From: Geosiphon pyriformis uo1
Lineage: Eukaryota > Fungi > Glomeromycota
Length of the DNA: 37,192 nucleotides
NCBI GenBank assembly: GCA_016748015.1
Contig: JAAOMT010000299.1
Coordinates: forward strand, 432,810 to 470,001
Direction of reading: 5' to 3'
The notes under the pieces were generated by a model. The model did no database searches. It saw only the letters and a list, made by a program, of their open reading frames with translations, and was not told the origin of the DNA. A program made the position numbers and the translations under genes. Positions 9,725 to 16,494 of this stretch are shown here, piece after piece; position 1 is the stretch's first letter, and each line of letters starts with the position of its first letter.

Positions 9725-11543
9725 ATGGCGAACTCTCCTCCAAACTCTAAAGAACCCGCTACAAGTGGGAGTAGTGGTTTTTCCATGTCGATTCAGACAA
9801 TTAGCACTAAATGGCCAGAAAAAAGACCTAAATTTTTTGAAGAAGAAAAAAAGAAAAAACGTCGTGTAGATGATGAAGGCGAAGAAGAGTTTGACGAAGT
9901 GGTAAAATACATGACAAGTTTCGATAAAAACCAAACTCCAAGGTAAACCTTTAATTGATGTTTGTATTCTTCTTCCGAATTCTACCGAAATTTTGTTAAA
10001 CAGTTTCAACAAACTGACACAGCTCTAAAGATGCAACTGCTGCTTGTTCCCTACGGAATAACTTACCCTAACGGTATTGTATATCCGAAATTCTCCCTCT
10101 ATTTCAGTCATAAAGAAGGTCAGGAAATAAACCCCCTAGTGATCCCGTCTTTAACACTGCCGAACTGGACTGACCGAATTAGTACGATTGCGGCTCAAAG
10201 GCATTCCCTTGGAAAAGAACCTTCAAATATTTCTAAATCCGAATCTTTAAACGTTGTAACCCCCGTCTCTTACGGTTTAATGCCTAAAAATTCTATCCGC
10301 AAAAACTTTTTAAACACCGTCCATGCCCCAAGTGATAATCACAAACCCACTGACTTATTCCAGGATGAAATTCATAATCAAGAAAAAATGCTACGGCAAT
10401 TAGCTTTAGAAGAAATAATGAAAGGTATTATGATTTTATATATTTATATTTCCAAGGAATCATTTATCATTTCCACTTTATTCATCTCTTCTTGATAAGC
10501 TCATCACAATACTCTACATAGGATCAGACAAGGAAGATATTCAAAATGAGAGAGAAACAGATTTGATTTTACCGCAGATTGAAAACAATTATACCCAAGA
10601 TAAAAAAGTCAAAGATGATGATGAAGCTTTTCGGTGTATGATTGATAGCTATCCGGATGAGGTAAATTAAATAAAAATCATTTCAGATTTTTCCCCTCCG
10701 AAATCTTGCGTCCGAGTTTCTGGCACTCTATAACTCATTAATTCTCACCGAAATAAGGCAAAAATAAATTATGAACGCATTCCTATACAAGAATTCGGGG
10801 CAGCACTATTACGCGGTATGGGCTGGAAGCCAGGAATGAGTATAGGGAAAAATCAAACGAATAAGTATGTTAAAAATAATTAAATATCCTTTATATCTGA
10901 CCTCAGTTCCCTAATTAATCCGACTTATATAATACAAAGAGCTCTAAAATTATATGAACCCCAACATCGACCTACCCATTTGGGTCTTGGAGCATCAGTA
11001 CTTCCATCCTCACACTTAATGGAACAAAGGTAGTTGCATATTGTAAATTTTGATTTTTCGTTCAAAACCACAGGCATAATTATAGCCTTATCTTAATCCT
11101 CATTACGTATTCATACAAAGTTTCATTCGTTTCTTATTTGAAGCACAAAATTCCAAAATGTAACTAGTGCAGTGATTCCGAAAAGGGTTGAAAAGGTAGA
11201 TCGAGCACAATCTAACAACCCTGAAAGGGGGATTGATAGGACTCGCGAAGATGAGTCTAAAAAAGATAAAACTCCTAATATTGGGGAAAATTCCCGACAA
11301 TTTCGGAGGACTACGCATGGTGACAGTAATCGACGAGATCATCATTCTAGTCGAAATTATCGGTATGAAAGTCCTGCGAGATCTGAGAGTAGAGGAAAAT
11401 CTGATTTTTCGCCTAATAGAAAAGACGAGTCACATCGGCATAGGAGGTCACGAGATAGTCATGAGAAGGCTTCTGACAAACCAAGAACAAGGGAAGAATA
11501 TAAAAAAGAATATCATTCAAGAAAAGACAAAAGAAAGGAATAG
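9725..11543 (+). CDS. SPP2: Spp2/GPKOW-type G-patch protein (Prp2 co-activator), 6 exons
   Basis: Manual splicing with GT-AG sites and consistent phases gives exons 9725-9942, 10108-10424, 10522-10661, 10758-10864, 10940-11029 and 11144-11543. The protein has the Spp2-type G-patch YPDE-AKINYERIPIQEFGAALLRGMGWKPG...RPTHLGLGA, an N-terminal PLVIP...NW motif and an R/S/D/E/H-rich tail. Confidence 0.88.
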
Positions 11544-11731
11544 CAGATCACCAAGTATACCTATTCCTTGGCCAAGAAGGTAAGCACAGAAAGAAGGTAA
11601 TGTTTTCTTCCTTATATTTGTAATAATGTTTGTGCCAAGCTAACCCTCTTTCGAGTTCAATAAGAGTGAGGCGCTTGGAAGAAAATATATATAGGTAATA
11701 GAAATTCTAAGTTTACTGCTAGTCGATATTT

Positions 11732-14700: not shown

Positions 14701-16494
14701 AATTACTTGATAGTCGTTTATGGCCTTGAGTAAATCATCACGGAACTTATAAATGGGGAGAGACTTGCGTGTATCTTCAATTGTTTTTGCTGAAGAAAAT
14801 TATTAGAATCAAAAGTATATTCTACAATCATAAATTAAGAAAATAACAACATTATTAAGGAGGATACCTTGTCTTTCAGCTTCATCAACTAGAGCTGAAA
14901 TATCATCAGTTTTATTTTTCCAATCCCAATTTAGAAATTCCATTTCTTGCTGCTCATCAAAAATGTAATCATACTCTTTTTCTTCCTTTGACCTATCCTG
15001 AGCACCTGTCTTCAATTGAGATTTTACGATTTGATTTTGTTCCCATTGATCTTGGTCAGTAACGAACTTGTTTTGATCACGATCCTCTTCGTAGCGTTGA
15101 TACAGAACAGACTCCTTCTTCTTTTTATCGATTTTCCCCAGTTCAGTGATATAATCTAATGAGTAGAGCAAAGAATCATCAGAATGTCATAAAGCAGGTT
15201 AAGAGTTTCAATCAAATTATCACCTTCAGGTAAAGAGTATTCTTCTGTTTTTTTAGAAAGGCTCAACCTTCCTTTCGTCAATTGAAGAGTATCTTTCTTT
15301 AATTCATAATCCCTTTTTTCTTTTTTCGTCAACTTAGTATCTTTGAACAAAGTTTCCTCATCACGGATTTCTTGTTCCATTAGCAGCATTTGCTGTTCGG
15401 CCCGAGCTTTCAGATAATCTTGACGAGATCTTTCTCGAATATTAGGCAAATATTCTTTCCGCGCTTCTGGATCGTCAGCAAGATTACGTCGTAGAACAGA
15501 TTCACTTTGTGATTTTGACGATCGATCTTCTATTAGCTGTCTCATATGCAATTAATAATTTTAGTAGTAAAATAAAAAAGCTGAAAGCATACTTTAGCTT
15601 TTACTTGACCTACCTTTTTTGTTTTTTCCTTATCCTTCTCTCTGATCCGCTTTGCGAATTCATCTCTTTCCTTTAAATCTTGCATTTTTTCCCGCTGTTC
15701 TCTTTCATAGGCATCTTCAGGATCTATCATAAAATATATCAGCCTATGCTCGAAGTACGACAGTAATTATGACCATGTTTAACCTACCAGGGGATTCTTC
15801 TTTATCACTAGGATTCAGCACCCTGCCATCATCTTCTGGGTCACTTTCCCAAGCGTTGGACAATTCCTTTTTGCGGAGATGTTTGCCTTTCTTTGATTTC
15901 TTTGATTTTTTCGAGAAAATTCCGCCGTCATCTTTATTATCATTGGGATGTTCGTCTAATAGAAGTTTATATTTTGCATTGTTCTCTATTTTAGCTTTGG
16001 CTTCTTGCTCTTGTCTTTTACGTTTCAATGACGCGATCTGGAAAACAAGTTTTTAAATGTTAAAAACAAAAATCAACAAACAATCAGGAACAACAAGTAA
16101 AAGATCCAATTTCCAGAGACCTATCATACATTGGGTTGAGAAGCAGAGGCCTTTCTTGGAACGCGTTCAAATAGTTGATCTATAAAGTCTGAAGCTCCAT
16201 ATGGGAACTCGCTCAACTTTTGGTGAAGGGATTCTTTTGATTTTGCAGATTGAGCTGTAATTACATTGATTTATCAAGTTTTTATTTGAAATTCTAGGAA
16301 ACAGCTTTTAAAGAGACTCATTTTGTTGAAAAATTTTACCTTGAGCTATGATGTAATCGACCATGTTACTTTCCGAAATGTTCAGGAACTAGAAATGAAA
16401 ATTTTAATTACACTTTTTAATTCTGTAATCCTAAGAAGTTATGAACTCTAAAAACCTTTATTATATTGTCTGAGACCCAAGAGCGCAAATCCAT
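11732..16494 (-). CDS. PRP2: DEAH-box pre-mRNA splicing helicase Prp2/Cdc28/DHX16, 19 exons
   Basis: Starts [13 protein letters not shown] (ATG at 16494), followed by a charged N-terminal region typical of DHX16 ([20 protein letters not shown]). Helicase motifs [42 protein letters not shown] and QRTGRAGR are present, then HA2/OB regions ([22 protein letters not shown]). Ends ...[18 protein letters not shown] with TAA at 11732-11734. All 18 introns are GT-AG. Confidence 0.95.
12473..12652 (-). ncRNA. Candidate structured intronic RNA element in PRP2 intron 16 (unclassified)
   Basis: The intron (12389-12683) is 295 nt versus roughly 60-110 nt for the others. Arms 12503-12521 and 12556-12574 form a continuous 19-bp helix on the - strand with four G-U pairs, and there are flanking hairpins. 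Confidence 0.45.

Follow-up and report, generated by a model that had tools for sequence, protein, structure and literature searches.

The Prp2 and Spp2 Orthologs of Geosiphon pyriformis Are Convergent Neighbors, Most Probably Brought Together by a Lineage-Specific Rearrangement

Within a 37,192-nucleotide (nt) stretch of the Geosiphon pyriformis uo1 genome (GenBank assembly GCA_016748015.1, contig JAAOMT010000299.1, positions 432,810 to 470,001), hereafter called the window, a gene assigned to the Spp2/GPKOW type of G-patch proteins (plus strand) and a gene assigned to the Prp2/DHX16 DEAH helicases (minus strand) converge tail-to-tail. As read from the sequence, their stop codons are separated by a spacer of 188 bp (11544–11731) and their 5′ ends lie 6.8 kb apart, exactly at the coordinates given in a preliminary description of this DNA, in which the pair was taken for a selected two-gene module of spliceosome activation. 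Our analysis leads to a different conclusion. These are known genes in a lineage-specific adjacency, which in all likelihood arose neutrally, from rearrangement, and is not kept by selection, both genes being ordinary single-copy orthologs; an antisense overlap of their transcripts is a minor lead.

The comparison with other fungi, which had been proposed as a check of the module, went against it. The loci of Spp2 orthologs in 12 other fungi (Table 1), with flanks of up to 10 kb per side, were searched for called genes with DEAH-helicase domains, and none was found at any of them (0/12), including the loci of two Ambispora species, which belong to the same order as Geosiphon. Moreover, TBLASTX searches with the region 11700–16500 of the window as a query gave nothing at E ≤ 0.01 against the loci L003–L010 (eight loci) and L014–L017, while the same query detected pieces of paralogous helicases in the Geosiphon genome, which served as a positive control. 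When the whole window was compared (TBLASTX) with L003–L005 and L014, only the G-patch gene was matched. Restriction of the adjacency to one genome, which had been named beforehand as an outcome refuting a module, is what was found among the 12 fungi sampled.

The gene neighborhood of Spp2 in related fungi points in the same direction. A WD40 gene located upstream of Spp2 is common to both Ambispora species and Diversispora, and the Geosiphon orthologs of this gene and of the RsmB-F methyltransferase neighbor of Spp2 in Ambispora were both identified on another contig (C692). As the Ambispora neighbors of Spp2 are found elsewhere in Geosiphon, it is the Geosiphon arrangement that is derived. 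A literature search found no report of a Prp2–Spp2 adjacency. The yeast genes PRP2 and SPP2 are located on different chromosomes, as are the human genes DHX16 and GPKOW.

It is also worth mentioning that in Saitoella coloradoensis (L016, 1–357) a DEAD-box gene of the DDX23/Prp28 type is localized approximately 9.6 kb upstream of the Spp2 ortholog, with three genes between them. This proximity of a spliceosomal helicase is a coincidence, and it shows that such pairs turn up easily.

Several points weigh against a neutral, lineage-specific origin. Downstream of Spp2, only 3.1 kb of flank was available for A. gerdemannii and 1.2 kb for Acaulospora, although a helicase situated 188 bp away would still reveal its OB-fold exons even in flanks of this length. 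Synteny was tested from the Spp2 side only, the sample is without Rhizophagus, Paraglomus, Archaeospora, and Mortierellomycotina, and a single Geosiphon genome exists, so the persistence of the pair within this lineage cannot be judged. Finally, the antisense overlap described below may have a functional consequence.

The preliminary description argued further that a chance adjacency of an enzyme and its cognate cofactor is improbable. The G. pyriformis assembly comprises 129 Mb in 795 scaffolds, with 64% of repeats and 1.893 genes per 10 kb (PMC9453076), and the product of the first and the last of these values gives approximately 24,400 genes, among which one named pair would be adjacent with a chance of about 2/N = 8 × 10−5. 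This is not the relevant figure, since the pair was picked post hoc. Many windows were scanned and each genome contains thousands of recognizable enzyme–partner pairs, and therefore occasional hits are to be expected; the argument overlooks exactly this choice among thousands of possible pairs. A rearrangement within a genome built in 64% of repeats would most likely have placed Prp2 and Spp2 side by side, neutrally, and the 188-bp spacer would then let their transcripts overlap at the 3′ ends as a by-product. Judging from homology, the G-patch of the Spp2 protein presumably binds to Prp2, coupling the ATPase of the helicase to the remodeling of the B-act complex into B*, as in yeast and human.

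The identification of the G-patch gene, as already made in the preliminary description, was upheld. Both gene models were built by reading six-frame translations and splice sites off the window sequence. The resulting model, with its last exon placed by cDNA (see below), has 423 amino acids (aa), as does the database protein P0002, annotated as 'hypothetical protein G9A89_020335 [Geosiphon pyriformis]'; exon 4 of the gene is matched by this protein at 100%. The G-patch_2 domain (PF12656) was recognized with 59 bits (E = 4 × 10−16) on exon 4 alone and with 75.1 bits (cut-off 26) on P0002, whereas the generic G-patch family PF01585 reached 19.4 bits, which is under its cut-off. The best matches in the PDB were human GPKOW (7dvq_y, E = 2.5 × 10−8) and yeast Spp2 (7dco_y, E = 3.8 × 10−5), and other G-patch cofactors, i.e., Pxr1 (E = 0.29) and SUGP1 (E = 0.6), were not significant in this search. 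When the complete genome (128.3 Mb, 792 contigs) was scanned with PF12656, the G-patch gene was the only strong match (67.8 bits). Hence, in terms of domain type, best matches and copy number, this gene is assignable as the single-copy Spp2/GPKOW ortholog of G. pyriformis.

Two other candidates were rejected. The second PF12656 match in the genome (27.6 bits, on contig C649), considered as another Spp2, belongs to a G-patch protein of another kind, which has a zinc-finger-like region. A Prp2–Spp2 fusion was considered for P0140 (1355 aa, G-patch at residues 1044–1073), but Pfam showed this protein to combine BRCA2 OB2, G-patch_2, and GPKOW_C, with no helicase.

A HMMER search with exon 4 against 1.84 billion representative proteins yielded 589 hits, and all the full-length ones that were scanned with Pfam carried G-patch_2, with the exception of P0010, a low-complexity hit. 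The alignment with eight fungal orthologs revealed conserved N-terminal motifs and an invariant G-patch core. Moreover, the TBLASTX matches to the two Ambispora species are interrupted at one common point, consistent with an intron position shared with intron 4 of the Geosiphon gene. The Pfam analysis of P0002 found neither KOW nor GPKOW_C domains, so its architecture is Spp2-like, similar to that of the other orthologs seen in Glomeromycotina, Mucoromycotina, and Dikarya; the C-terminal tail of the protein is of low complexity and rich in Arg, Ser, Asp, and Lys. The Spp2 ortholog of the chytrid Kappamyces sp. (L017, 10001–11484) retains GPKOW_C, and those seen in Glomeromycotina, Mucoromycotina, Dikarya, and Phlyctochytrium have G-patch_2 alone. 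This distribution suggests that the KOW/C-terminal module was lost early or repeatedly in fungi.

For the helicase, searches were run with single exons. Its motif I (GETGSGKT) is encoded in exon 8 and motif II (DEAH, within IIDEAHERT) in exon 9, and the Pfam analysis of its exons indicated Helicase_C, HA2_N (1.9 × 10−12), HA2_C (7.8 × 10−6), and OB_NTP_bind (2.4 × 10−21). Exon 8 matched Prp2 of C. thermophilum (139 bits) and human DHX16 (121 bits) best in the PDB, followed by the weaker DHX8 (107 bits), Prp16 (99 bits), and Prp43 (82 bits). For the OB-fold exon DHX16 was ranked at the top as well, and for the N-terminal exon 6 (104 aa) residues 198–281 of DHX16 were the sole significant match (E = 5.9 × 10−5). 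Searching the Geosiphon genome with exon 8 revealed six weaker paralogous places, and the two nearest pieces had Prp16/DHX38 (on C675) and DHX8/Prp22 (on C457) as their best matches. As the top matches of the helicase are Prp2/DHX16 and the nearest paralogs within its own genome match Prp16 and DHX8/Prp22, by best-hit logic it is the Prp2/DHX16 ortholog, in agreement with its original naming. It should be stressed that the exons above position 14360, i.e., the 5′ part of the gene, are predicted from sequence and lie outside the complementary DNA (cDNA) cover, and that in-frame alternatives exist for the donor site of exon 5. The intron 12389–12683 (295 nt) is the longest one in either gene model; a cDNA contig lacks precisely these coordinates, and no Rfam family matching this intron was found.

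A single public sequencing run was found to cover the pair. It consists of contigs only, the depth of which is uninformative, and its record does not state that RNA was sequenced; the run was recognized as cDNA-like because its contigs lose introns precisely at GT..AG boundaries. These contigs confirm four of the five introns of the G-patch gene (introns 2–5) and nine of the 18 introns of the helicase gene. A single contig of 2,564 letters holds exons 2–6 of the former, with introns 10425–10521, 10662–10757, 10865–10939, and 11030–11143 removed, together with exons 9–18 of the latter, from which the nine introns between 12152 and 14281 are missing. A cDNA joint fixes the start of the last G-patch-gene exon at 11144 and rules out the alternative start at 11168.

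Minor discrepancies were also noted in these contigs. At positions 9819–9824, within coding exon 1 of Spp2, the genome has a run of six A, against seven in a cDNA contig, and seven would break the frame. The extra A probably reflects an error of the contig, slippage or an allelic difference, since the conserved motifs on either side of the A-run, GFSMSIQ upstream and KKRRV downstream, share one frame in the genome and in the orthologs. The contig bridging the two genes stops at 14360, within helicase exon 9, where its ten terminal letters (CCGGCCGAGA) have no match and probably come from an adapter or a chimeric end. The contigs of the run do not cover 14500–15699 or the canonical helicase exon 19, and such holes prove nothing.

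An overlap of 3′ untranslated regions (UTRs) had been put forward as one means of coupling the pair, and the overlap as such is supported by the bridging contig. This contig is unbroken from 11141 to 11692, i.e., for 149 nt beyond the Spp2 stop codon and to about 40 nt short of the helicase stop codon, and it continues through two further joints (11692>11827 and 11846>12044), both of the GT..AG type on the plus strand. The splice sites are canonical in the genomic sequence (TATAG/GTAAT..AAAAG/T and AAAG/GTATT..CTAG/G). The resulting RNA runs antisense to exons 19 and 18 of the helicase gene, and its second joint falls within exon 18. The ambiguity at each joint amounts to 2–3 letters only and the middle exon is short (20 nt), which speaks against a repeat-driven jump of the assembly. 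The plus-strand RNA is therefore probably a read-through isoform of Spp2, whose 3′ UTR contains introns and which is antisense to the last exons of Prp2. The evidence for it is one unstranded contig of a single study, which does not prove a single molecule. The 3′ overlap is a by-product usual for closely convergent genes and does not speak for a designed coupling.

A neutral origin could have been followed by a secondary regulatory coupling specific to Geosiphon, in which the read-through isoform feeds back on spliceosome activation. The canonical plus-strand joints past the Spp2 stop codon, landing in helicase exon 18, favor it, and two routes could be considered: with rising splicing activity, proportionally more of the messenger RNA (mRNA) of Spp2 could be directed to nonsense-mediated decay, or Prp2 could be damped by double-stranded RNA or transcriptional interference. 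However, the contig carries no information on abundance, strand, or decay, transcriptional noise commonly includes read-through antisense isoforms where genes converge this closely, and conservation cannot be tested, so that we consider such coupling unlikely. Still less probable is a complete circuit, created by the chance juxtaposition, in which the spliceosome-activation pair is tuned through its own product; here, splicing dependent on Prp2/Spp2 would mark the 3′-UTR-spliced Spp2 mRNA for decay or would yield double-stranded RNA against Prp2.

The module itself, in which selection keeps the adjacency and fixes the Prp2:Spp2 stoichiometry via co-expression, UTR overlap or co-translational assembly, is very improbable. 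It is favored by the nature of the two proteins, a one-to-one helicase–cofactor pair, as described for GPKOW–DHX16 in human (bioRxiv 10.64898/2026.06.30.735655) and Cwf28–Cdc28 in S. pombe (PMC13541149), and by genes lying 188 bp apart with overlapping transcripts. Nevertheless, besides the absence of the pair in 12/12 other fungi, same order included, and its post hoc selection, the convergent orientation excludes a shared promoter, and convergent overlap causes interference more often than co-expression. Neither a bidirectional promoter nor a common transcript serves the pair as a shared regulatory region, the two genes being convergent, and the 5′ spacer of Prp2 (about 200 bp, divergent) is common with a UFD1-domain gene and not with Spp2. 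Co-translational assembly, in turn, does not need genomic linkage in eukaryotes, in which mRNAs are exported separately. That the two genes are not true neighbors and were joined by the assembly, which is fragmented (792 contigs) and repeat-rich, has a negligible probability, because the cDNA contig bridges both genes, crossing between them at 99%+ identity with no other mismatches, and there is no gap or run of N between them.

The lineage-specific, neutral placement is therefore the reading retained here. With it, the annotation gain is limited: the Geosiphon 'hypothetical protein' G9A89_020335 may be named Spp2 and its neighbor Prp2, with little beyond that. The case also calls for caution, as the adjacency of a cognate enzyme and cofactor in a single eukaryotic genome does not argue for a module before synteny has been examined. 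Should the antisense, 3′-UTR-spliced isoform prove to be regulated, it would be a neat case of a newly born regulatory link made by rearrangement.

The pair is part of a compact island of three genes (approximately 9.7–19.1 kb) in an AT-rich window, where a guanine–cytosine (GC) fraction of 0.35–0.40 contrasts with 0.10–0.26 in the flanks. This contrast, together with the retroelement domains present in the window, bears out the earlier picture of a small gene island in repeat-rich DNA. The remnants flanking the island comprise a dUTPase domain (31437–31940, plus strand) and an integrase H2C2 zinc-binding domain (34591–35037, minus strand). The third gene of the island (approximately 16600–19100, plus strand) is oriented head-to-head with Prp2, their starts being about 200 bp apart, and has an unusual architecture, in which UFD1_N1 and UFD1_N2 are followed by zinc fingers of the XAF1/TRAFD1 type and a weak AZUL match. 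The Rfam scan of 9000–17000 revealed no RNA family at E ≤ 0.1. The coordinates of the gene models and the Spp2 loci compared are summarized in Table 1.

Table 1. Gene models of the convergent pair in the window, and the Spp2-ortholog loci of the 12 other fungi used for the synteny analysis
Feature	Position or locus	Strand	Basis or remarks
Spp2/GPKOW-type G-patch gene	9725–11543	+	ATG at 9725, stop TAG 11541–11543; 6 exons, 423 aa
G-patch gene, exons 1–3	9725–9942, 10108–10424, 10522–10661	+	splice sites from sequence
G-patch gene, exons 4–6	10758–10864, 10940–11029, 11144–11543	+	splice sites from sequence
G-patch_2 domain, interrupted by intron 4 (10865–10939)	10758–11029	+	PF12656
Spacer, shared 3′ UTR territory	11544–11731	.	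sequence reading; cDNA contig covers as far as 11692
Read-through spliced RNA past the Spp2 stop	11544–12150	+	11544–11694, 11829–11848 (20 nt), 12046–12150; introns 11695–11828, 11849–12045
Prp2/DHX16 ortholog (by best-hit logic)	11732–16494	-	ATG at 16494, stop TAA 11734–11732; 19 exons, 1055 aa
Helicase, exons 1–7	16494–16456, 16388–16340, 16254–16130, 16037–15788, 15723–15614, 15536–15224, 15155–14868	-	frames and splice sites
Helicase, exons 8–13	14789–14527, 14464–14282, 14198–14096, 14008–13875, 13796–13638, 13551–13420	-	frames and splice sites
Helicase, exons 14–19	13346–13182, 13109–12897, 12827–12684, 12388–12221, 12151–11929, 11838–11732	-	frames and splice sites
Ambispora leptoticha	L003		Archaeosporales (order of Geosiphon)
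Ambispora gerdemannii	L004		Archaeosporales
Diversispora epigaea	L005		Glomeromycotina
Phycomyces nitens	L006		Mucoromycotina
Phlyctochytrium planicorne	L007		chytrid
Dentiscutata heterogama	L008		Glomeromycotina
Microbotryomycetes sp. JL221	L009		Basidiomycota
Dactylellina cionopaga	L010		Ascomycota
Acaulospora morrowiae	L014		Glomeromycotina
Apophysomyces sp.	L015		Mucoromycotina
Saitoella coloradoensis	L016		Ascomycota
Kappamyces sp.	L017		chytrid

Compared with known systems, the predicted Geosiphon helicase resembles Prp2 of S. cerevisiae, Cdc28 of S. pombe, DHX16, and C. thermophilum Prp2 (6fa5) in its DEAH core, HA2 winged-helix and ratchet, and OB fold, as well as in the conserved C-terminal tail and the N-terminal extension, which aligns only to DHX16. 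Nothing functional differs notably from the known Prp2 proteins, and the distinguishing features are the 19 exons, one unusually long intron of 295 nt, and Spp2 as a convergent neighbor. The predicted Geosiphon Spp2 is like Spp2, Cwf28, and GPKOW in its G-patch_2 core (FGxALLRGMGWKPG), and its N-terminal motifs GFSxxxQ, LVIP, SYGL, and EAFR are common to the fungal orthologs. Unlike human GPKOW, and unlike the Kappamyces ortholog with its GPKOW_C, it is devoid of KOW and GPKOW_C, and with its 423 aa it is far longer than yeast Spp2 (185 aa). As a pair, the two genes resemble the convergent pairs with overlapping 3′ UTRs (natural antisense transcripts) of compact fungal gene islands, with which they share the tail-to-tail layout, the short spacer, and the antisense read-through, and they differ from such ordinary pairs in that the partners are a cognate enzyme and cofactor and that the read-through isoform is spliced twice in its 3′ UTR.

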